This document shows, piece after piece, positions 1,309 through 64,000 of a stretch of 64,000 bases of DNA (position 1 is the first letter of the stretch; each line of letters opens with the position of its first letter). Under the pieces are notes generated by a model. That model was given only the letters and a program-made list of their open reading frames with translations, ran no database searches and was not told the DNA's origin. The stretch is from the NCBI RefSeq assembly GCF_028641065.1, contig NC_073383.1:33790001-33854000 (forward strand), written 5' to 3'. The translations under genes and the position numbers were made by a program. Source of the DNA: Leucoraja erinacea. Its lineage: Eukaryota.

Positions 1309-1494
1309 AGATAGACACAAAAAGCTGGAGTAACTCAGCGGGACTGGCAGCATCTCTGGAGAGAAGGAATAGGGAAGAAGGGTCTCGACCCGAAACATCA
1401 CCCATTCCTTCTCTCCATAGATGCTGCTTGTCCCGCTGAGTTACTCCAGCTTTTTGTTTCTAACTTTGGTTTAAACCAGCATCTGCATTTCCTA
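1309..1494. mobile_element. Penelope-derived palindromic element with a decayed hammerhead core
   Basis: ~60-bp inverted arms 1313-1373 and 1401-1461; central GAAGAAGGGTCTCGACCCGAAAC; 12-bp flanking repeat aaacacagcaga at 1297 and 1495. Confidence 0.7.
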
Positions 1495-16236: not shown

Positions 16237-16604
16237 TGGAGACACAAGGAATTGCAGATGTTCAAGTCTTGAGCAAAACACAAAATGCTGGAGGAACTCA
16301 GTGGGTCAGGCAGCAACTGTGGAGGGAAATGGACAGACTATGTTTCAGGTCAGTACCATTCTTCGATGTGGTGGGAAAGAAACAGGAAAAGACACGTGTG
16401 GATATGGCAAAGCCTAGCAAAGGTTAGGTGGATACAGGTGATGGATTTTTTTGTGGCAGATGGAATAAGTGGCATAAGCCAGAGGCAAAAATGAGACAAA
16501 AGGATGTCAGGTAAAGAGGGATGAGAAGAAGTGAAATTGGAGGGATGGGATCTGGTGGAAGGGGATAAAGGTGAAATAAGTGACAGGGATGTGGAAAGAG
16601 CATA

Positions 16605-16671
<67 letters not shown>

Positions 16672-16835
16672 GGGGGGGGGGGGGGGGGGGGGGGGGAAAG
16701 AAGTGAATAGTGAATGGGGAAAACTGTGTGCACACTATGTGTGTTAGAGGGGGAAGGAGGGGAAAAGGAATAGTAGGGAGTCAGGAAACCTGAAACTGGA
16801 AAATTCAATGTTTATACCGATGGGTGGTAAGTTGG
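16237..16835 (-). mobile_element. Penelope-like element 3' fragment containing a ~90-nt poly-G run (16606-16696)
   Basis: Minus strand reads PIGINIEFSSFR (typical PLE ORF end), then a terminal repeat like the 1309 element. Confidence 0.65.
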
Positions 16836-40062: not shown

Positions 40063-41768
40063 AGTTTAGTTTATTATTGTCATGTGTACCAAGGTACAAT
40101 GAAAAGCTTTTGTTGCATGCTATCCAGAGAAAAGACTATACACAATTACAATCATGTCGACCACAGTGGGCAGATACTGTAAAGGGCACAACATTTAGTG
40201 CAAGATAAAGTCCGATTAAAGATAGTTAAAAGTCTCCAATGAGGAAGATGGGAGGTCAGGTCCGCACTGTAGCCGATGAGGGGACGGTTCAGTTGCCTGA
40301 TAACAGTTGGGAAGAAACTGTCCCTAGTATGTGCTTCCAAACTTCTATTCCTCTTGCCTGATGAGAGGAGAAAGGGAGTGACTTGGTGAGACTGATCTTT
40401 GATTATGCTGGTGGCCTTGCCGATGCAGCATTAAATTTAGATGGATTAAATGGAAGGGATGTTGGTTGGCCTGATGGTCTGGGCAACGTCCACACTCTGC
40501 AATTTCTTGTGGTCTTGGATGGAGCTGTTCTTAAACCTAGCTGCGATGCATTTCGATAAAATGCTTTCTACGGCGCATCTGTAGAAGTTGGTGAGGATTA
40601 TTGGGGATATGCAGAACTTTCTAAGCCTTCTAAGGAAGTAGAGGCATTTGATGGGCTTTCCTGGTAATGATGTTGCTGGCCAATGAAAAATTGCTGGTGA
40701 TATTTATTCCGAAGAACTTAAAGCTTTCAACCACGTCTACTTCTGTGCCATCAGTGAACGTGTACTGCTTCGCATCATGAAGTAATTCATAATCTTCTTT
40801 TCCTTGCTTTCATTCAGGGAGAGGTTGTTCCTTTGGCACCAAGTTACAAGGCTCACAATCTCCTTTCTATATTCTGTCGCCATTATTTGATATCCAGCCC
40901 AGTACAGTGCTGTCATCTGCAAACTTGCAAAGTTGGACTGGTATTTGGCTGCACAGTCGTGAGTGTATAATGAGTATAGTAGGGCGCTGAACATGCATCA
41001 TTGCGGGGCACCAATGTTGAGGATTACTGTAGAGGATGATTTGTCACCTATCCTCACTGATTGTGGTCTGCTGGTCAAGAAGTTGAGGATACAGTTGCAG
41101 AGGAGAGTGCCAACTCCATGTTTGGAGATTAGCTTAGTTGGCATAATTATTGAAAGCAGAGCTTATAGTCGATGAAGGAGACTCTGATGTGGGGGTCCTT
41201 CTTACCCAGATGCTCCAGGGATAAGTGTAGGGCCAGAGAGATGGCATCAGCATGGGCGTGTTGTGGTGGTAGGCGAACTGCAGTGGATCAAGGCTGCTTA
41301 ATAAACTGGATTTTATAGGTTCCGTAACTAGCCTATCAAAGCACTTCATGATGCTGGATGTTAAGCCCACTGGATGGTAGTCATTAAGGCATGAGGTCTT
41401 CTTTTCTGTGGCACCGAGATCGTAGCCATAGTGGTCTTCCTGAAGTAGATGGCTACCTTAGAACGGAGCATGGAGTAATTAAAGATGCCTGTGAACACTC
41501 CCTCTAGATGGCCTGCGCCGTTCCTAAGGATGCGGTCAGGGACTCTATCCGGGCCAGTTGCTTTCCTTGAGTTCACCCTCAGGAAGGCGGAAATAACTTC
41601 TTCAACAGTGGGGAAAGGCACACTCGAGTCCGACAGGACGGAATGCATCGCCACGTTGTCCTTCGCTCAAAGCGGCCATATAATGCATTAAATGCATCAG
41701 GGAATGCCGAACAATAATCAGGGATGCTGGTGATTGTTCACTTTGCTGCCAATTATAGTATTCAGGCC
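40063..41768 (-). mobile_element. Rex1/Babar non-LTR retrotransposon, 5'-truncated
   Basis: [25 protein letters not shown] and LYSLYTHDC motifs; taaactaaact tail. Confidence 0.85.
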
Positions 41769-41941
41769 TTGGGCAATCAATGGAAATGTGTTGAGGTCAG
41801 TCAATATTGTGGTTGAGGAGGTGCTGAACACCCTAACGCGTATGATGGTAGACAAATCTCCTGGGAATGATCAGATATATCCAAGGGCATTGTTGGAAGC
41901 AAAAGAAGAAATTGCAGTTGCCCTGGCTGAGATATACGAGT

Positions 41942-41995
41942 GGGGTGGAAGATTGCAACCTTCATTTGGTCCGCCCTGTTTCGACTAATGCAATC
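41942..41995 (+). ncRNA. Minimal HDV-like ribozyme fold
   Basis: P1 GGGGTGG/CCGCCCT (G1.U); P2 GATTGCA/TGCAATC; P3 ACC/GGT; L3 TTCATTT; J4/2 CTAA. Confidence 0.78.
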
Positions 41996-42079
41996 AACTC
42001 GACGTGCACAAACGTAAGATCAAATCGAACAAGTTGTCCAACAACTTTAGGCTGTGCACGCCACACGAAAGAAGAAGAC
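41942..42079 (+). mobile_element. 138-bp non-autonomous retroposon (Ingi/Vingi-like) with a 5' HDV-like ribozyme
   Basis: 8-bp TSD atacgagt at 41934 and 42080; GAAAGAAGAAGA tail. Confidence 0.8.
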
Positions 42080-42409
42080 ATACGAGTAATCATTTAATAT
42101 AGGCGAGCTGCCAGAAGACTAGAGGGTGGCAAATGTTGTGCCTCTATTTAAGAAAGGTTGCAAGGAAAAGCCTGGGAACTATAGGCCAGTGAGGCTAACA
42201 TCTGTGGTCTTAGAGTTACAAGAGAGATTCAGAGGGATAAGATGAACATTCATTTAGATAGACAAGGCTGATTAGGGATAGTCAGCACGGTTTTGTACAT
42301 GGGAGATCATGTCTCACAAATCTGATTGAGTTTTTTGAATATGTAACTAAAGAGGTTGACGAGTGCATAACTGTAGACGTGGCCTATATAGATTTCAACA
42401 AGGCATTTA

Positions 42410-43092
42410 TAGTCATACGGCATGGAAACAGGCCCTTTGGCCCAAATTGCCCATGCTGACCATTATGCCCATCTACACTAGTCCCACCTGCCCGCACTTG
42501 GCACATAACCCTCCAAACCTATCATATCCATATACCTGTCCAAATGTCTCTTAAATATTACGATAGTACCTGCCTCAACTACCTCCTCAGCAGCTCGTTC
42601 CATTTACCCACCACCCTTTGTGTAAAAAAGTTACCCTTCATGTTCCTATTAAATCTTTCCCCACTCATTTTAAGCCTATGTTGTCTGGTTCTCGATTCCC
42701 CTACTCTGGGCTAAAGAGTCTCTGCATTACCCCAATCTAGTCCTAGCCCGTTCAACCTTTCCCTATAGCTCAGGCCCTCGAGACCTGGCAACAACCTCAT
42801 AAATCTTCTCTGCACCCTTTCCAACTTGACAACATCTTTCCTATAACATGGTGATCAAAACTGGACACAATATTCCAAATGTGGCCTCACCAATGTCTTA
42901 TACAACTGTAACATGACCTACCAACTTCTATACCTAATACTCTGACTGATGAAGGCCAATGTTATCTACCTGTGATGCCACGTTCAATGAACTATGTACC
43001 TGCACTTGCTCTGTTCTACAACACTCCCAAGAGCACTACCACTCGCTCTGTAGTTCTTGCCCTATTAAGACTTCCCAAACTACAACATCTTG
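42410..43092 (-). mobile_element. Antisense CR1 3' fragment nested in CR1
   Basis: Reverse complement of CR1 ORF2 end and 3' UTR. Confidence 0.8.
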
Positions 43093-44092
43093 TATTTGAC
43101 AAGGGCCCACACAGTAGGATGATCTGGAAGGTTAGATTGCATGGGATCTAAGATGAGCTAGCCGACTAGATGGAAAATTGGCTTCATGGAAGGAAGCAGA
43201 AGGTGATGGTGGAAGGTTGTTTTCCTGACAGGAGGCCTGTGACTAATTGTGTGCCTCAAGGATCGCTGCTGGGCTCATTGGTGTTTGTGGATTATATCAA
43301 CGGGTTGGATAAGAATGTACAAGGCATAGAGTCATAGAGTGATTAGTAAATGTGCAGATTACACTAAAGTGGGTGGTATTGTAGATATTGAAGATGGTTA
43401 TCAAAGATTACAGCAGGATCTTGATCAGTTGGGAAAGGGGGGAGACGGGTCAATGGAATTTAATGCAGATACGTTTGAGGTGTTTAAACGAGTCATTTGG
43501 GGAAGTCTAACCAGGGCAGAGCCGTCACAATGAATGGCAGGGATCTGGGGAATGTTGTAGAGCAAAGAAACCGTGGAGTGCAGGTACGTTTCCTTGAAAT
43601 TGGCGTCACAGGTTGATAATGTGATTAAGAAGGCTCTTGGCACATTGGCCATACCACCTTATCTACCTGTGACACCAATTTCAAGGAAACATACCTGCAC
43701 TCCACGTTTTGTACAGCTATAACATAACATGCCAAATTTATACTCAAAACCCTGACTATGATGTTATGTTATAGCTGTACTAAGTGCTAGTGAGGTCACA
43801 GTTGGAGTATGGTGTTTAGTTTTGGTCACCCTGCTATAGGAAAGATGTTGCTAAGCTGGAAAGACTGCAGAGAAGATACACAAGGGTGTTGCCAGGACTT
43901 GGGGGACTAAACTTTCGGGAGAGGTGTATAAGATCATGATGGGGAATAGATAGATTAGATGAACAGAACATTTTAACCAGAGTAGGGGAATGAAGATCCA
44001 GTGGACAAAGGTTTAAGGTGAGAGGGGAAAGGTTTAATAAGAATCTGAGGGGCAAAGTTTTCACACAGAGGGTGGTGGGTATAGACAATAAT

Positions 44093-44900
44093 TGACAATA
44101 GGTGCAGGAGTAGGCCATTCAGCCCTTCAAGTCAGCACCGCCATTCAAGGTGATCATGGCTGATCATCCCCAATCAGTACCCCGTTCCTGCCTTCTCCCC
44201 ATATCCCCTGACACCACTATCTTTAAGAGCCCTATCTAGCTCTCTTGAAAGCATCCAGAGAACCTGCCTCCACCGCCCTCTGAGGCAGAGAATTCCATAG
44301 ACTCACCACTCTCTGTGAGAAAAAGTGTTTCCTCGTCTCAGTTCTAAATGGCTTACTCCCTATTCTTAAACTGTGGCCCCTGGTTCTGGACTTCCCCAAC
44401 ATCGGGAACATGTTTCTTGCCTCTAGCGTGTCCAAACCCTTAACAATGTTTCAATAAGATATCCCATCATCCTTCTAAACTCCAGAGTGTACATGCCCAG
44501 CCGCTCCATTTTCTCAGCATATGACAGTCCCGATATCCCGGGAATTAACCTTGTAAACCTACGCTGCACTCCCTCAATAGCAAGAATGTCTTTCCTCAAA
44601 TTAGGGGACTCCAGGTGTGGCCTCACTAGGGCTCTGCAGAAGGACCTCTTTGCTCCTAAACTCGACTCCTCTTGGTATAAAAGCCAACATGCCATTCGCT
44701 TTCTTCACTGCCTGCTGTGCCTGCAATCTTACTTTCATAGACTGATGAACAAGGACCCCCAGATCCTATTGTACTTCCCCTTTTCCCAACTTGACGCCAT
44801 TTAGATAGTAATCTGCCTTCCTGTTTTTGATATCAAAGTGGATAACCTCACATGTATCCACATTAAACTTCATTTGCCATGCATTTGCCCACTCCCCCAG
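44093..44900 (-). mobile_element. Antisense CR1 3' fragment (same subfamily as 51062-51887)
   Basis: KPFRTETRKHFFSQRVVSLWNSLP. Confidence 0.85.
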
Positions 44901-45357
44901 GTATATATCCATATATGGAATTAGCTGCCAGAGGAAGTAGTTGAAGCAGAAACTATAACAACAATTAAAAGACATTTGGACAGCTACATGGATAGGGAAA
45001 GTTTAGAGAGATATGGGCCAAACGCAGGCAGGTGGGACTAGTGTAAATGGGGCACCTTGGTTGGCATGGGCAACCTGGACCGAAGGGCCTGTTTCTGCGT
45101 TACATGGCTCCGTGACTTCAAAAAGGTCATCCCTTGGCCTCCTCCGCTCCCAAGAAAAAAGTCCCAACCTATCCAGCCTCTCCTTATGACATCCTCCAAA
45201 CGCTGGGCACCTTGAACTGTACACAACATTCCATGTGGTCTCAACATGTACTTTTACAGCTGTGCCATAATGTCCAACTTTTGTAGTCAACACTCTTCCC
45301 ATTTAATGCAAGCGAGTCAAATATCTTTTCACACCCATTGAGGGAACCATTCACCTG

Positions 45358-45615
45358 CAGTTTGGTTTAGTGATGCGGTGTGAAAACAAGCCCCTTGGCC
45401 CATCGAGTCCCTGCCAACCAGCGATTACCAGTACACTAGTTCTATCCTACATCATAGGGACAATTTACAGAAGCCAATTAACCTACAAACCTGGACGTCT
45501 TTGGAAGGTGATAAGAAACCGTAGCACCCGGAGAAAACCCATGTTGTCACAGGGAGAACGTACAAACGCCATGCAGACAGCACCCATCATGAGGATCGAA
45601 CCCGAGTCTCTGGAC
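45358..45615 (-). mobile_element. HE1-like V-SINE
   Basis: Reverse complement of the SINE core and tail. Confidence 0.7.
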
Positions 45616-46126
45616 AAGAGACTTAACAAGAAATTAAAGCCCAGCAGAGCCAGCAATCATAAAATCAACAGAAATCAAAGAACCCAATAGTATTAAAACA
45701 ACTGATGTGACCCAGAAACACTTTCTATTTTTTTTAAATGAACAAAGCTGCTGGTGTGTGAATTTTCACATGACATGTAACAAGAAAGTCTGTATGAGAA
45801 TTTTCAAACACCATTTTTCAGTGAACTTTTAACACCACAGAATCCTACCATGGTTGTATCACTTCAGAAGAAGCACAGTGTATCAAGAACAAAAATGATC
45901 AACTCATGTTTTGCAAAGCTGATAAAATTTGAAGGCAGAACAGATTCCTTGTGTTCTTTTACAATTCAGATCCAAATTAACAAAATTGTCAAATATCAGG
46001 TAACATCAAATGAGATGAACTACAATTTGACATGGATAGATTCAATGTCTGCTTCATTCCATTGTAATATTTACTTAGTGCCCTGGAAAAGAAGATTACA
46101 ATCTCTTTGCAGGATAAAATATTACA

Positions 46127-46420
46127 AGGTGGCACTGTGGCACAGCTGGTGGCGCTGATGCCTCACACCACCAAAGACCCTGTTCGATCCTGACCTGTGT
46201 GGAGTTTGCATGTTCTCCCTGTGACCGCATGGATTTCCTCTGGCTGCTCGGATTTCCTCCCACATCCCAAAGACATGCGGGTTAATAGGTTATTTAACTG
46301 CTGTAAATTGGTCCTAGTGTGTAGGATGATAAAGTGGGATAAAAAAGAATTGGTGTGAATGGGTGATCAATGGTCAGCGTGGACTCAGTGGACCCGTTTC
46401 AATGCTGTAACACTAAACCA
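46127..46420 (+). mobile_element. Near full-length HE1-like V-SINE
   Basis: tRNA-like A/B boxes (TGGCACAGCTGG; GTTCGATCC), V-domain tgtgtggagtttgcatgttctccc, ctaaac tail. Confidence 0.8.
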
Positions 46421-46672
46421 AACAAAATAACTTATTTTAAGGGTCACTTTGCTGTACCATCCAGGAATGTGCCCAAGTTTATATTTTTAAGGCAGAGATA
46501 GATAGTTTTTTGATTAGGATGGGTGTCAGGAGTTATGGGGAGAAGGCAGGAGAATGGGGTTTGGAGGGAGAAATAGATCAGCCAGATGACTTGATGGGCC
46601 GAATGGCCTAATTCTGCTCCTATCACTTATGATCTTATGACCCAAGTTTGCAGCATTTTGTAAACTGAGAAT

Positions 46673-46724
46673 GGGGTCAAGGAAAGAGCGTTCACGTCAC
46701 GGCCCTGTTTCCGCCAATCTTTCC
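46673..46724 (+). ncRNA. Minimal HDV-like ribozyme fold (one P3 mismatch)
   Basis: P1 GGGGTC/GGCCCT; P2 GGAAAGA/TCTTTCC; P3 GCG/CAC; L3 TTCACGT; J4/2 CCAA. Confidence 0.68.
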
Positions 46725-46806
46725 ACCCCCGCGCACAAGAAGCGACAAGACATACACCATTGTATGCAGATGCAGAGAAGTGTGTTCAGCTCGATAAGAA
46801 GAAGAA
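46673..46806 (+). mobile_element. 134-bp non-autonomous retroposon (Ingi/Vingi-like) with a 5' HDV-like ribozyme
   Basis: TSD ctgagaat at 46665 and 46807; AAGAAGAAGAA tail. Confidence 0.78.
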
Positions 46807-46838
46807 CTGAGAATCACCAGCCTAAAGTTGGTTCTTAC

Positions 46839-47045
46839 CACGTTCTACATCGTTGCCAACCATGACTTGTTTCTGGCGTAGTAGAAGATCATGCTCCTCA
46901 CATAGATGAAGATTCTCCTGGTTGAGTTCATGAAGTTGCTGGCTCAGAAGTTCCACCTGAAGGGCCAGATGCTCCTCCAATTCTTCCTTCTTCTGCAAAG
47001 CTTCTTCCAGTGCTGCTTTCTCCATGACATATCCTTCAATCAACC
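46839..47045 (-). CDS. PCNT: PCNT exon (LIEGYVMEKAALEE...DVER), 207 nt, phase 1/1
   Basis: Acceptor attactag; donor GTG|gtaaga. Confidence 0.87.
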
Positions 47046-48106
47046 CTAGTAATGGCAGATGATCGAGCAAATCATTTTTTTTTAGAAATGATTGCAAATT
47101 CTAAAACTTGTGGTCGGAGCCAACATTAAATTGGTGGCAAGTGTAAAACAAAGCAAGTTTCTTTCTAAGAGGGAACAAGAATGTAAAGAAAAAGGTGATC
47201 AATAGGTGCAGGTGCATGGTTCCTTGAAGGTGGAGTCGCAGGTAGATCGAGTGATCAAAAAGGCTTTTGGCATGTTGGCCTTCATTAGCCAGAGTATTGA
47301 GTATAGAAGTTGGGAGGTCATGTTGCAGTTGTATAAGACGTTGGTGAAGCTGCATTTAAAGCATTGTGTTCAGTTCTGGGCACCGTGTTATAGGAAAGAT
47401 GTTGTCAAGCTGGAAAGGGTACAGAGATTTACGAGAATGTTGCCAGAGCTAGAGGGTCTGAGCTATAGGGAGAGGTTGAATAGGCTGAGACTCTATTCCT
47501 TGGAGCACAGGAGGATGAGGGGTGATCTTATAGAGGTATACAAGGTCATGGGAGGAATAGAGAGGGTAGATGCATAGAGTCTTGCCCAGAGTAGGTGAAT
47601 CGAGGACCAGAGGACATAGGTTTACGGTGAAGGTGAAAATATCTTATAGGAATCTGAGGGGTAACTTTTTCACACAAAGGGTGGTGGGCTTATGGAACAA
47701 GCTGTCAGAGGAGGTAGTGGAGGCAGGATTCCAACATTTAAGAAACAGTTAGACATGTACATGGAAAAAGGGAAGTGCAACGAGACCTGGGTGTCCTTGT
47801 ACACCAGTCACTGAAAGTAAACATGCAAGTACAGCAGGCAGTGAAGAAAGCTAATGGCATATTGGCCTTCATTACGAGATGATTTCAGTATAGGAGTAAA
47901 GAGGTCCTTCTGCAGTTGTACAGGGCCCTGGTGAGACCACATCTGGAATATTATGAGCAGGTTTGGTCTCCTAATTTGAGAAAGGACATCCTTGCTATTG
48001 AGGAAGTGCAGCGTAGGTTCACGAGGTTAATCCCCGGGATGGCGGGACAGTCATATGAGGAAAGATTGGAAAGACTGGGCTTGTATTCACTGGAATTTAG
48101 AAGGAT

Positions 48107-51061: not shown

Positions 51062-51887
51062 TTGATGCACAATGCCAAATGTCTTTTAAATGTGAGGTTA
51101 TCCACTTTGGTAGCAAAAACAGGAAGGCAGATTACTATCTAAATGGCATCAAGTTGGGAAAAGGGGAAGTACTACGGGATCTGGAAGTCCTTGTACATCA
51201 GTCTATGAAAGTAAGCATGCAGGTAAGCATGCATGCAAGAAAGCAAATGGCGTGTTGGCCTTTATAACAAGAGGAAACGAATATAGGAGCAAAGAGGTCC
51301 TTCTGCAGTTGTACAGAGCCCTAGTGAGACCACACCTGGAGTATTGTGTACAGTTTTGGTCCCCAAATTTGAAGAAGGACATTCTTGCTATTAAGGGAGT
51401 GCAGCGTAGGTTTACAAGGTTAATTCCCGGGATGGCGGGACTGTCATATGCTGAGAGAATGGAGCAGTTGGGCTTGTACACTCTGGAGTTTAGAAGGATG
51501 AGAGGATATCTCATTGAAACATATAAGATTGTTAAGGGCTTGGACAGGCTAGAGGCAGGAAACATGTCCCCGATGTTGGGGGAGTCCAGAACCAGGGGCC
51601 ACAGTTTAAGAATAAGGAGTAAGCCATTTAGAACGGAGACGAGGAAACACTTTTTCTCACAGAAAGTGGTGAGCCTGTGGAATTCTCTGCCTCAGAGGGC
51701 AGTGGAGGCAGGTTCTCTGGATGCTTTCAAGAGAGAGCTAGATAGAGCTCTTAAAAATTGCAGAGTCAGGGGATATGGGGAGAAGGCAGGAACGGGTTAC
51801 TGATTGGGGATGATCAGCCATGATCACATTGAATGGCGGTGCTGGCTCGAAGGACCAAATGGCCTACTCCTGCACCTATTGTCTATA
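51062..51887 (+). mobile_element. CR1 3' fragment
   Basis: ORF 51252..51803 LVRPHLEYCVQFWSP; 3' UTR. Confidence 0.9.
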
Positions 51888-53952: not shown

Positions 53953-55097
53953 GTATACAAACTTAAAGCACACGGTATTGGGGTTCAGTATTGATGTGGA
54001 TAGAGAACTGGCTGGCAGACAGGAAGCAAAGAGTAGGAGTAAACTGGTCCTTTTCACAATGGCAGGCAGTGAATAGTGGGGTACCGCAAGGCTCAGTGCT
54101 GGGACCCCAGCTATTTACGATATATATTAATGATTTGGACGAGGGAATTGAATGCAACATCTCCAAGTTTGCGGATGACACAAAGCTGGGGGGCAGTGTT
54201 AGCTGTGAGGAGGATGCTAGGAGGCTGCAAGGTGACGTGGATAGGCTGGGTGAGTGGGCAAATGTATGGCAGATGCAGTATAATGTGGATAAATGTGAGG
54301 TTATCCACTTTGGTGGCAAAAACAGGAAAGTAGATTATTATCTGAACGGTGGCCGATTAGGAAAGGGGGAGATGCTACGAGACCTGGGTGTCATGGTACA
54401 CCAGTCATTAAAAGTAGGCATGCAGGTGCAGCAGGCAGTGAAGAAGGCGAATGGTATGTTAGCATTCATAGCAAAAGGATTTGAGTATAGGAGCAGGGAG
54501 GTTGTACTGCAGTTGTACAGGGTCTTGGTTGGACCACACCTGGAGTATTGCGTACAGTTTTGGTCTCCTAATCTGAGGAAAGACATTCTTGCCATAGAGG
54601 GAGTACAGAGAAGGTTCACCAGACTGATTCCTGGGATGTCAGGACTTTCATATGAAGAAAGACTGGATAGACTCGGTTTGTACTCGCTAGAATTTAGAAG
54701 ATTGAGGGGGGATCTTATAGAAACTTACTAAATTCTTAAGGGGTTGGACAGGCTAGATGCAGGAAGATTGTTCCCGATGTTGAGGAAGTCCAGAACAAGG
54801 GGTCACAGTTTAAGGATAAGGGGGAAATCTTTTAGGACCGAGATGAGGAAAACTTTTTTCACACAGAGAGTGGTGAATCTCTGGAATTCTCTGCCGCAGA
54901 AGGTAGTTGAGGCCAGTTCATTGGCTATATTTAAGAGGGTGTTAGATGTGGCCCGTGTGGCTAAAGGGATCAGGGGGTATGGAGAGAAGGCAGGTACAGG
55001 ATACTGAGTTGGATGATCAGCCATGATCATATTGAATGGTGGTGCAGGCTCGAAGGACCGAATGGCCTACTCCTGCACCTATTTTCTATGTTTCTAT
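53953..55097 (+). mobile_element. Young 5'-truncated CR1 (RT domain to 3' end)
   Basis: SGVPQGSVLGPQLF and FADDTK; tttctatgtttctat tail. Confidence 0.92.
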
Positions 55098-59382: not shown

Positions 59383-60610
59383 CTAGTAGAGTGGATAGGG
59401 GAGAACCAGTGATGTGTTATATCTGGACTTTCAGAAGGCTTTCGACCAGGTCCCACGTAAGAGATTAGTATACAAACTTAAAGCACACGGTATTGGGGGT
59501 TCAGTATTGATGTGGATAGAGAACTGGCTGGTAGACAGGAAGCAAAGAGTAGGAGTAAACGGGTTCTTTTCACAATGGTAGGCAGTGACTAGTGGGGTAC
59601 CGCAAGGCTCAGTGCTGGGACCCCAGCTATTTACGATATATATTAATGATTTGGATGAGGGAATTGAATGCAACATCTCCAAATTTGCAGATGACACAAA
59701 GCTGGGAGGCAGTGTTAGCTGTGTGGAGGATGCTAGGAGGCTGCAAGGTGACTTGGATAGGCTGGGTGAGTGGGCAAATGTATGGCAGATGCAGTATAAT
59801 GTGGATAAATGTGAGGTTATCCACTTTGGTGGCAAAAACAGGAAAGTAGACTATTATTTGAATGGTGGCCGATTAGGAAAGGGGGAGATGCAGCAAGACC
59901 TGGGTGTCATGGTACACCAGTCATTAAACGTAGGCATGCAGGTGCAGCAGGCAGTGAAGAAGGCGAATGGTATGTTAGCATTCATAGCAAAAGGATTTGA
60001 GTATAGGAGCAGGGAGGTTCTACTGCAGTTGTACAGGGTCTTGGTGAGACCACACCTGGAGTATTGCGTACAGTTTTGGTCTCCTAATCTGAGGAAGGAC
60101 ATTCTTGCCATAGAGGGAGTACAGAGAAGATTCACCAGACTGATTCCTGGGATGTCAGGACTTTCATATGAAGAAAGACTGGATAGACTCGGCTTGTACT
60201 CGCTAGAATTTAGAAGATTGAGGGGGGGATCTTATAGAAACTTACTAAATTCTTAGGGGTTGGACAGGCTAGATGCAGGAAGATTGTTCCCGATCTTGGG
60301 GAAGTCCAGAACAAGGGGTCACAGTCTAAGGATAAGGGGGAAATCTTTTAGGACCGAGATGAGGAAAACATTTTTCACACAGAGAGTGGTGAATCTCTGG
60401 AATTCTCTGCCACAGAAGGTAGTTGAGGCCAGTTCATTGGCTATATTTGAGGGAGTTAGATGTGGCCCTTGTGGCTAAAGGGATCAGGCGGTATGGAGAG
60501 AAGGCAGGTACAGGATACCGAGTTGGATGATCAGCCATGATCATATTGAATGACGGTGCAGGCTCGAAGGGCCGAATGGCCTACTCCTGCACCTATTTTC
60601 TATGTTTCTA
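59383..60610 (+). mobile_element. Young 5'-truncated CR1, nearly identical to 53953-55097
   Basis: ORF 59585..60256 with RT motifs; same tail. Confidence 0.92.
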
Positions 60611-63114: not shown

Positions 63115-64000
63115 CATATAACACTTACAGCACGGAAACAGGCCATCTCAGCCCTACAGGTCCGTGCCGAACAATTATTTCCCCTTAGTCCCTTCTACCT
63201 GCACTCAGACCATAACCCTCCATTCCTTTCCCATCCATATACCTATCCAATTTATTTTTAAATGATAAAATTTAACCTGCCTCCACCACTTCCACTGGAA
63301 GCTCATTCCACACAGCTACCACTCTCTAAAGAAGTTGCCCCTCATGTTACCCCTAAATTTTTGTCCCTTCATTCTGAAGTCATGTCCTCTTGTTTGAATC
63401 TTCCTTACTCTCAGTGGGAAAAGCTTATCCACATCAACTCTGTCTATCCCTCTCATCATTCTATCAAGTCCCCCCTTAACCTTCTGCGAATAAATACCTA
63501 ACTTATTCAACCTTTCTCTGTAACTTAGTTGCTGAAACCCAGGCAACATTCTAGTAAATCTCCTCTGCACTCTCTCTATTTTGTTGACATCCTTCCTATA
63601 ATTGGGCGACCAAAATTGTACACCATACTCCAGATATGGTCTCACCAATGCCTTGTACAATTTTAACATTACATCCCAGCTTCTATACTCAATGGTCTGA
63701 TTTATAAAGGCTAGCACACCAAAAGCTTTCTTTACCACCCTATCTACATGAGATTCCACCTTCAGGGAACTATGCACAGTTATTCCTAGATCCCTCTGTT
63801 CAACTGCATTCCTCAATTCGCTACCATTTACCATGAACGTCCTATTTTGATTTGGCCTGCCAAGATGTAGCACCTCACACTTATCAGCATTAAACTCCAT
63901 CTGCCATCTTTCAGACCATTCTTCCAAATGGCCTAAATCTCTCTGTAGACTTTGGAAATCTACTTCATTATCCACAACACCACCTATTTTAGTATCATCT
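63115..64000 (-). mobile_element. CR1 RT-to-3' fragment, runs off the window
   Basis: ORF 63316..63975 WQMEFNADKCEVLHLG, LVRPYLEYGVQFWSP. Confidence 0.9.

Follow-up and report, generated by a model that had tools for sequence, protein, structure and literature searches.

What sets the 5′ ends of two 134- to 138-base mobile elements in the genome of the skate Leucoraja erinacea? A preliminary description, made from sequence alone, proposed that each is a retroposon headed by a minimal HDV-like ribozyme. To address this question, we present here an analysis of the 64,000-nucleotide stretch of DNA that holds both (the window; RefSeq assembly GCF_028641065.1, contig NC_073383.1, positions 33,790,001 to 33,854,000, forward strand). 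Both elements begin, at the very first base after the insertion scar, with a predicted stripped-down fold of the hepatitis delta/CPEB3 self-cutting RNA type. By inference from sequence, this fold most likely trims the element's own 5′ end.

Results

The observation in the preliminary description is confirmed, including its coordinates and features (Table 1). Both inserts start with GGGGT, end in AAG/GAA repeats, and are flanked by perfect 8-bp target-site duplications (TSDs). Insert 1 splits an old LINE reading frame, and removal of the insert plus one TSD copy restores one continuous frame.

Table 1. Coordinates of the features of inserts 1 and 2 and the neighboring exon, numbered from the first base of the window.
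Position	Strand	Feature	Details
41942-42079	+	Insert 1	138 nt
41934-41941	+	Left TSD copy, insert 1	ATACGAGT; exact repeat of 42080-42087
41942-41995	+	Head, insert 1 (predicted P4-less HDV-like fold)	54 nt; P1 41942-41948/41971-41977; P2 41951-41957/41989-41995; P3 41958-41960/41968-41970; L3 41961-41967; linker 41978-41984; J4/2 CTAA 41985-41988; all 17 helix pairs standard or G.U; descriptor hit with 0 mismatches; no Rfam hit at E≤10
41985	+	Predicted catalytic cytosine, insert 1	First base of J4/2; position inferred from the fold
41996-42065	+	Body, insert 1	Predicted 8-bp stem 42003-42010/42053-42060; MFE −17.3 kcal/mol, z −1.49, 21 of 200 shuffles fold as well (weak support)
42066-42079	+	3′ end, insert 1	CGA-AAGAAGAAGAC; shared in form with insert 2
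42080-42087	+	Right TSD copy, insert 1	ATACGAGT
46673-46806	+	Insert 2	134 nt
46665-46672	+	Left TSD copy, insert 2	CTGAGAAT; exact repeat of 46807-46814
46673-46724	+	Head, insert 2 (predicted P4-less HDV-like fold)	52 nt; P1 46673-46678/46701-46706; P2 46681-46687/46718-46724; P3 46688-46690/46698-46700 (C x A mismatch in the middle); L3 46691-46697; linker 46707-46713; J4/2 CCAA 46714-46717; descriptor hit; Rfam CPEB3_ribozyme hit at 46661-46724
46713	+	Private G in this copy	Family has A, just 5′ of the predicted catalytic C at 46714; A in 297265 of 303308 summed depth (run X1), in 128 contigs, and in 143 of 149 RNA reads (run X22)
46725-46791	+	Body, insert 2	Predicted stem 46749-46755/46780-46786; MFE −15.2 kcal/mol, z −1.99, 8 of 200 shuffles fold as well (weak support)
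46792-46806	+	3′ end, insert 2	CGATAAGAAGAAGAA
46807-46814	+	Right TSD copy, insert 2	CTGAGAAT
46841-47062	−	Coiled-coil coding exon of the host gene	Open frame ending at a GTAAGA donor about 25-30 nt from insert 2

Each head is predicted to form the nested double pseudoknot of HDV-like ribozymes, in which P1 is crossed by P2 and P3 lies inside P1. P1 has 7 bp in insert 1 and 6 bp in insert 2 and is closed at the predicted cleavage site by a G1.U wobble (G41942.T41977 and G46673.T46706). P2 has 7 of 7 pairs in both (GATTGCA/TGCAATC and GGAAAGA/TCTTTCC). P3 has 3 of 3 pairs in insert 1 but only 2 of 3 in insert 2, so the earlier claim that P3 keeps its pairing is slightly overstated. The conserved core comprises J1/2 AA, L3 TTCAYKT, a GTTTC linker, and CNAA, in which the predicted catalytic cytosine is the first base of J4/2 (a role taken from PMC10879173). 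For P1.1, between L3 and the bases after P1, only one C-G pair plus a T x T is found in both heads. Between the two heads, eight pairs show double-sided changes (5 of 7 in P2, 1 in P1, and 2 in P3). The helix letters of P2 and P3 are 5/20 identical, while the unpaired core is 15/20 identical (75%).

A structure-only descriptor of the fold has exactly two start sites in the window, both at the first base after a TSD. Forty dinucleotide shuffles gave 4 hits in all (mean, 0.1). The strict descriptor with A, G, or T at the catalytic position gave 0, 0, and 0 hits. Plain minimum free energy (MFE) folding does not single out the heads (z, −0.2 and +0.5), as expected for a pseudoknot, which that program cannot score, and z scores of the whole elements are likewise unremarkable. 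The second stem claimed for both inserts has only weak support (Table 1).

Rfam models were searched with cmscan. The mammalian CPEB3 ribozyme model (RF00622) hits insert 2 at 23.2 bits, below the gathering score of 35, with an E value of 0.0078 for the 5.2-kb region and 0.097 for the whole window. In the alignment, 18 of 20 letters are identical across P3-L3-P1′. Insert 1 has no hit, and a scan of the window at gathering scores gave 0 matches. No other Rfam family was found, including tRNA, 5S, 7SL, and snRNA at E≤10 in 41800-46950, and ARAGORN found no tRNA gene there.

Both inserts belong to very abundant families. Summed contig depth at 46713 is about 303,000, against about 30 in single-copy stretches of the same run, or roughly 10^4 times single-copy depth, and the bin holding insert 1 has 1.1 million. 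Values are similar in the runs of two other organisms, giving three related species in agreement, although depth is not a copy number. Contigs of one of the organisms compared (organism C) reach 36 nt into insert 2 from the right flank and 29 nt into insert 1 from the left flank, so both insertions are shared between close species. Two of two copies in the window start at G1, and searches for more copies found none. That the contig from the left flank stops 29 nt into insert 1 is as expected if the repeated part begins at G1, but this is indirect. In a partial survey of RNA read starts, swamped by other repeats, many molecules begin at 41847 and 42096, but neither G1 appears among these places. 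No LINE in the window shares either terminus, and there is no similarity to either terminus elsewhere in the window.

Discussion

We interpret the inserts as two copies, from two subfamilies, of a very short ORF-less non-LTR retroposon, in Kojima's terms a bipartite non-autonomous LINE, with no polymerase III head (probability, about 0.75). In this view, the 5′ module is a minimal, P4-less HDV-like ribozyme with a CPEB3-type L3 and core, and the 3′ module is a stem plus a CNCGA(N)AAGAAGAAGA end, which a LINE reverse transcriptase would recognize. A copy would be transcribed passively as part of a longer host or read-through transcript, and the head would then fold and cut 5′ of G1. A LINE enzyme would start target-primed reverse transcription on the (AAG)n end and copy the RNA to its last base, so that new copies would begin exactly at G1 and carry 8-bp TSDs. 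The analysis itself establishes the insert anatomy, the fold with compensated helices, its rarity by chance, and high copy number in several related species; catalysis and cleavage, co-transcription, and the identity of the LINE partner are inferred. Insert 2, with its P3 mismatch and a private G next to the predicted catalytic C, may be a dead copy.

The interpretation in the preliminary description, that these are promoter-independent SINE-like RNAs that cut themselves out of host transcripts and are mobilized by an Ingi/Vingi-type LINE, is partly supported. The retroposed nature, abundance, and ribozyme-like head are supported, while self-cleavage and excision from host transcripts remain inferences and Vingi as the partner is only a guess.

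The best-surviving alternative, which we consider unlikely, is that the fold is real but a fossil. The heads would descend from a LINE 5′ ribozyme that no longer cuts, and the uniform 5′ end would reflect full-length reverse transcription of an RNA whose start is set otherwise, for example by an upstream promoter in a master copy. The absence of G1 from the listed RNA starts, the two irregularities of insert 2, and the weak P1.1 are consistent with this. However, the two subfamilies kept the pairing through eight double-sided changes and kept the unpaired core, which argues for selection on the fold during amplification. In addition, insert 1 has no defect in any helix, and both inserts start exactly at G1. 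Much less likely is that these are ordinary SINEs with an unrecognized polymerase III head, or retropseudogenes of a small RNA, with a coincidental fold. Length, TSDs, microsatellite tail, and copy number fit a SINE, and no run of four T lies inside either insert, but no tRNA, 5S, 7SL, or snRNA match was found in 41800-46950, the helices are compensated, and the full descriptor is met twice at the exact TSD boundary against 0.1 expected per window. Unrelated 5′-truncated LINE tails can be all but dismissed, since, although both inserts end in a similar (AAG)n end, such tails share 3′ sequence and have random 5′ ends, and here the 5′ 54 nt share architecture and core while the middle parts are unrelated.

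Ribozyme-headed LINEs and their ORF-less bipartite derivatives are already in print (PMC5786205, PMC6765202). In R2 and its SIDEs, L1Tc/NARTc, ingi/RIME, and RTE, an HDV-like ribozyme lies at the extreme 5′ end, so the element starts at the cleavage site, there is no own promoter, and short derivatives keep only the 5′ and 3′ ends (PMC5786205, PMC3414825, PMC4035085). Here the predicted ribozyme lacks P4 and is only 52 to 54 nt, the whole element is about 135 nt, the host is a cartilaginous fish, and the depth implies about 10^4 or more copies, with no autonomous parent identified. R2 is rDNA specific, whereas these copies sit in an intron and inside an old LINE. Vingi makes many non-autonomous derivatives by internal deletion, and its 5′ UTR fragments occur in SINEs; it is not among the six clades listed as having a 5′ ribozyme (PMC5786205).

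The mammalian CPEB3 ribozyme has the same nested fold as predicted here, a G.U at the cleavage site, and a CNAA J4/2, and the weak form of P1.1 seen here may resemble that of CPEB3. In insert 2, 7 nt replace the 21 model positions of P4, P1 is 1 bp shorter, and the model's own G1 falls opposite the T at 46672. The skate element is multicopy and mobile rather than a single locus in a CPEB3 intron, and the host exon here is from a coiled-coil gene. Minimal HDV-like ribozymes (drz-Mtgn) and theta ribozymes of gut phages also lack P4, have a catalytic C as the first base of J4/2, are active in vitro, and are inactivated by C-to-U (PMC10879173). Those are in metagenomes and Caudoviricetes, often at tRNA 3′ ends, whereas the context here is a vertebrate retroposon with no tRNA nearby. 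That study's search of eukaryotic genomes covered human, mouse, and protists only. In literature searches, we did not find the P4-less, CPEB3-like form described in a cartilaginous fish.

A more far-reaching possibility, which we regard as doubtful but not excluded, is that the skate elements are living relatives of the source of the mammalian CPEB3 ribozyme. A CPEB3-type ribozyme would then have headed a LINE/retroposon lineage already present in early jawed vertebrates, and the single conserved mammalian copy would be an exapted head of such an element. This would supply the outgroup that the CPEB3 literature says is missing. It would also show that P4-less ribozymes, so far reported in phages and metagenomes, are used on a massive scale in a vertebrate genome.

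If the heads cleave, this would be one of the smallest self-processing mobile elements known in a vertebrate, and P4-less HDV-like ribozymes would extend from phages to vertebrates. It would also make the origin of the CPEB3 ribozyme, stated in print to lack any outgroup, directly testable. A genome carrying some 10^4 to 10^5 potential self-cleaving sites inside introns would face consequences for pre-mRNA integrity. A 52-nt natural ribozyme joined to a short LINE-recognized tail is also of interest to groups who build RNA templates for retrotransposon-based gene insertion and already use HDV-like heads (PMC13708176). The host exon beside insert 2 has only generic coiled-coil look-alikes, which do not establish the gene's identity. 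Both copies here are antisense to the host gene, although a sample of two proves nothing.

The insert regions were read directly and their boundaries were checked by script (Table of features), and the observation made in the preliminary description, of two short inserts bounded by 8-bp target-site duplications (TSDs) and headed by a predicted HDV-like fold, is upheld. Both inserts begin GGGGT, and they end CGAAAGAAGAAGAC (insert 1) and CGATAAGAAGAAGAA (insert 2). MAFFT aligned them with many identities in the first 55 columns and the last 15 and little in between. To look for more copies in the 64-kb window, we used BLAST with both inserts, two motif searches, a strict structural descriptor, and a relaxed descriptor allowing one mismatch and a P4 of up to 45 nt; none yielded a further copy. 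The relaxed descriptor gave 9 hits with the putative catalytic C, against 14, 7, and 17 with decoy A, G, and T, respectively, which is noise apart from the two known sites.

Table of features: positions in the window of the two inserts and of other features
Feature	Position	Strand	Description
Insert 1	41942-42079		138 nt, between two copies of ATACGAGT; inside an old LINE
Insert 2	46673-46806		134 nt, between two copies of CTGAGAAT; about 25-30 nt from the GTAAGA donor of a coiled-coil exon on the opposite strand
Private base of insert 2	46713		G in this copy, A in the family
LINE 3' end	46490-46640		Very abundant (…gggccgaatggcct…ctcctat…), directly upstream of insert 2
Abundant repeat	44053-44414		By far the most abundant repeat in the stretch
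Long hairpin	43702-43789		Near-perfect, about 20 bp per arm
Coiled-coil ORFs	21.7-35.4 kb	-	Other than the exon near insert 2
Reverse-transcriptase ORFs	53991-54731, 59585-60256, 51252-51803, 63316-63975(-)		Young CR1/L2-like LINE
Proline-codon run	16350-16808 and 16-22 kb	-	Long (CCN)n run forming a 152-aa ORF, in a stretch of high GC skew
Long hairpin	1328-1445		Probably an inverted repeat of a transposon

The reading frames of the old LINE upstream (…ALAEIYE) and downstream (…SFNIGELPED*RVANVVPLFKKG…) of insert 1 are one and the same frame once the insert and one TSD copy (146 nt, not a multiple of three) are taken out, which serves as an internal empty-site argument for a precise insertion. 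The two other copies of that LINE in the window stop short of the junction and so provide no paralogous empty site. If the other coiled-coil ORFs belong to the same gene as the exon next to insert 2, both inserts are intronic and antisense, which is an inference; a family look-up returned only generic coiled-coil families for this gene, and PCNT, a name suggested in a side note to the preliminary description, is only a putative identity.

Predicted fold

The heads were written out by script (Table of head parts). The MAFFT alignment of the heads is one column out of register in P2 and P3, and pairs were therefore counted by script. P1 crosses P2 and encloses P3, which is the HDV nested double pseudoknot without P4. 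G1 forms the G.U wobble in both heads, and P1.1 can be only one C-G pair plus a T x T. P2 has 5 of 7 pairs changed on both sides, P1 has one, and P3 has two; one P3 pair is broken in insert 2 (C x A), and the P1 of insert 2 is one pair shorter. Letters in P2 and P3 are 5/20 identical, whereas the unpaired core is 15/20 identical, a pattern that a structured RNA with a conserved catalytic core would show. The core identity becomes 16/20 with the family's letter at the private base of insert 2.

Table of head parts: parts of the predicted P4-less HDV-like fold in the two heads
Part	Insert 1	Insert 2
P1	GGGGTGG/CCGCCCT	GGGGTC/GGCCCT
J1/2	AA	AA
P2	GATTGCA/TGCAATC	GGAAAGA/TCTTTCC
P3	ACC/GGT	GCG/CAC
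L3	TTCATTT	TTCACGT
Linker	GTTTCGA	GTTTCCG
J4/2	CTAA	CCAA

The strict descriptor asks only for the helices, G1.U, a C in L3, a G after P1, a 4- to 9-nt linker, and CNAA. It finds exactly two start sites on both strands of the window, 41942 and 46673, while 40 dinucleotide-preserving shuffles gave 4 hits in all. Following the control used for theta ribozymes (PMC10879173), the putative catalytic C was replaced by A, G, or T, which gave 0 hits each. Both true hits start at the first base after a TSD and are followed by the same kind of tail, and neither property was built into the descriptor. Plain minimum free energy (MFE) folding is uninformative (z, -0.2 and +0.5 for the heads and -0.63 and -1.24 for the whole inserts), since it cannot score pseudoknots.

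Within 41800-46950, the only ribozyme family of Rfam matched at an E value of ≤10 is the mammalian CPEB3 ribozyme, which matches insert 2 at 23.2 bits (gathering score, 35) with an E value of 0.0078; a search of the whole window gives an E value of 0.097, nothing reaches gathering, and insert 1 is not hit. In the alignment, 18 of 20 letters across P3-L3-P1' are identical, and 7 nt stand where the model has 21 (P4). The model's first annotated P1 pair falls on 46673.46706, and its own first G falls opposite T46672; P1 here is therefore one pair shorter than in CPEB3, and the register is structural rather than letter-for-letter. The head thus resembles CPEB3 but is not a member of that family. 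Sub-threshold hits to several miRNA-precursor models on both strands came from the hairpin at 43702-43789, which is probably part of a fold-back repeat, and sub-threshold hits to unrelated plastid and miRNA models came from the hairpin at 1328-1445.

One core pattern was scanned in three public sequence collections to look for copies or an autonomous parent, giving 78 loci in metagenome contigs (rough expectation, about 76 chance hits), 39 in genome contigs, and 0 in viral contigs. None passed the full fold test, and none is a skate-type element. Ten of the matched loci (L009-L011, L015, L018, L043, L055, L061, L069, and L076), on gut and other metagenome contigs, carry a recurring sequence that folds as a P4-less HDV-like candidate with a 7-bp P1, a 5- to 8-bp P2, a TTCAC loop, and a TGTTTCC linker. 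These are possibly phage minimal/theta-type ribozymes, which would mean that the same short linker recurs in microbes. A second recurring group, from marine or gammaproteobacterial sources (L025 and L091 and, by eye, L005, L017, L058, and L066), has a 7-bp P1, a 7-bp P2, and a TGTTTCC linker.

Abundance and RNA

An RNA run (X22) and the contigs of three DNA runs from three organisms (X1, X12, and X5) were mapped to 41700-47100 (5,401 bases) at 80% likeness (Table of depths). The LINE flank upstream of insert 1 (bin 41700-41880) has a depth of about 21,000. Summed depth is not a copy number, but as an order of magnitude it means 10^4 or more copies per family in each species. The depth bin that holds insert 2 is confounded by the abundant LINE 3' end directly upstream of it. 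A contig of organism C covers 46771-47100 (36 nt into insert 2), another covers 41700-41970 (29 nt into insert 1, two short of the bridging criterion), and a contig of organism E reaches 46790. These species differ from the window by roughly 1-3% in the flanks. The two insertions therefore predate their split, but that split is shallow.

Table of depths: summed contig depth in the three DNA runs
Run	Single-copy depth	Depth at 46713	Bin 41881-42061 (120 nt of insert 1)
X1	about 30-40	303,308	1.11 million
X12	about 27	228,618	1.66 million
X5	about 21-23	196,453	0.86 million

X22 is a poly(A) RNA-seq run, of which about 6% was read. It covers 46713 with 149 reads, 143 of them with the family's A, and gives mean depths of 204 and 118 on the two mate directions in the insert 1 bin, against about 5 upstream. 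Family members are therefore present in RNA on both read directions, as expected for passive co-transcription. The positions listed as those where many molecules begin are only 41847 and 42096, and neither G1 is among them. This is a result against abundant G1-started RNA in that library, but a weak one: the library is poly(A)-selected, 50,469 of 53,217 mapped reads were only partly on the stretch, and the mapping was dominated by other repeats and did not resolve the junctions of the two inserts.

Interpretation and related elements

The elements are best read as ORF-less bipartite derivatives of a ribozyme-headed LINE. In this view, the RNA would be made as part of longer transcripts, the head would cut 5' of G1, and a LINE enzyme would recognize the 3' stem and the CNCGA(N)AAGAAGAAGA end and copy the RNA to its 5' end. 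The insert boundaries, the paired helices and conserved core of the predicted fold, its rarity in shuffled sequence, and the high depth come from the analysis, while catalysis and self-cleavage, release from longer transcripts, and LINE mobilization are inferred. The predicted 3' stems are only weakly supported (z, -1.5 and -2.0), and no LINE with matching termini is in the window. The preliminary description proposed self-excising, SINE-like RNAs mobilized by an Ingi/Vingi-type LINE, and this interpretation is supported only in part, the Vingi assignment being a suggestion of that description. We put the probability that these are ribozyme-headed non-autonomous retroposons whose 5' end is set by self-cleavage at about 0.75.

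Of the alternatives, a fossil, inactive ribozyme remains possible, especially for insert 2. A classical SINE head is not supported, as within 41800-46950 ARAGORN finds no tRNA and Rfam finds no tRNA, 5S, 7SL, or snRNA match at an E value of ≤10. Truncated LINE tails would not share a 5' architecture.

ORF-less bipartite non-autonomous LINEs have been reported from RTE, Ingi, Vingi, and R2 (PMC5786205), although Vingi is not in the list given there of clades with a 5' ribozyme. Minimal HDV-like ribozymes lack P4 and were first found in metagenomes; nearly 99% lie in Caudoviricetes, and the eukaryotic genomes searched were human, mouse, and protists (PMC10879173). The elements described here differ from the former in their P4-less head and from the latter in their retroposon context. 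Full-text literature searches on ribozymes in sharks, skates, and other cartilaginous fishes including Leucoraja, on minimal HDV-like ribozymes, on Vingi and ribozymes, and on the origin of the CPEB3 ribozyme returned no paper on such an element, although these did not extend to Repbase and Dfam, so that an existing repeat-library entry without the ribozyme reading cannot be excluded, or to the supplementary tables of PMC10879173 and PMC5786205, which might list eukaryotic minimal ribozymes or Vingi 5' ends.

Other repeats in the window

A homology search with LINE proteins of the window gave Leucoraja erinacea and ENA proteins at 88-97% identity. For the reverse-transcriptase ORFs of the young CR1/L2-like LINE, the best named relatives are Leucoraja erinacea proteins at 88-94% identity, and contigs labelled as Aeromonas and Proteus carry the same fish-type reverse transcriptase, which is probably contamination. 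The most abundant repeat in the stretch (44053-44414) has a summed depth of about 16-18 million in X1 and thousands of RNA reads, and loose ends before 44097 read as (ATAGAAAC)n-like repeats, suggesting the tail of a CR1-type element on the minus strand.
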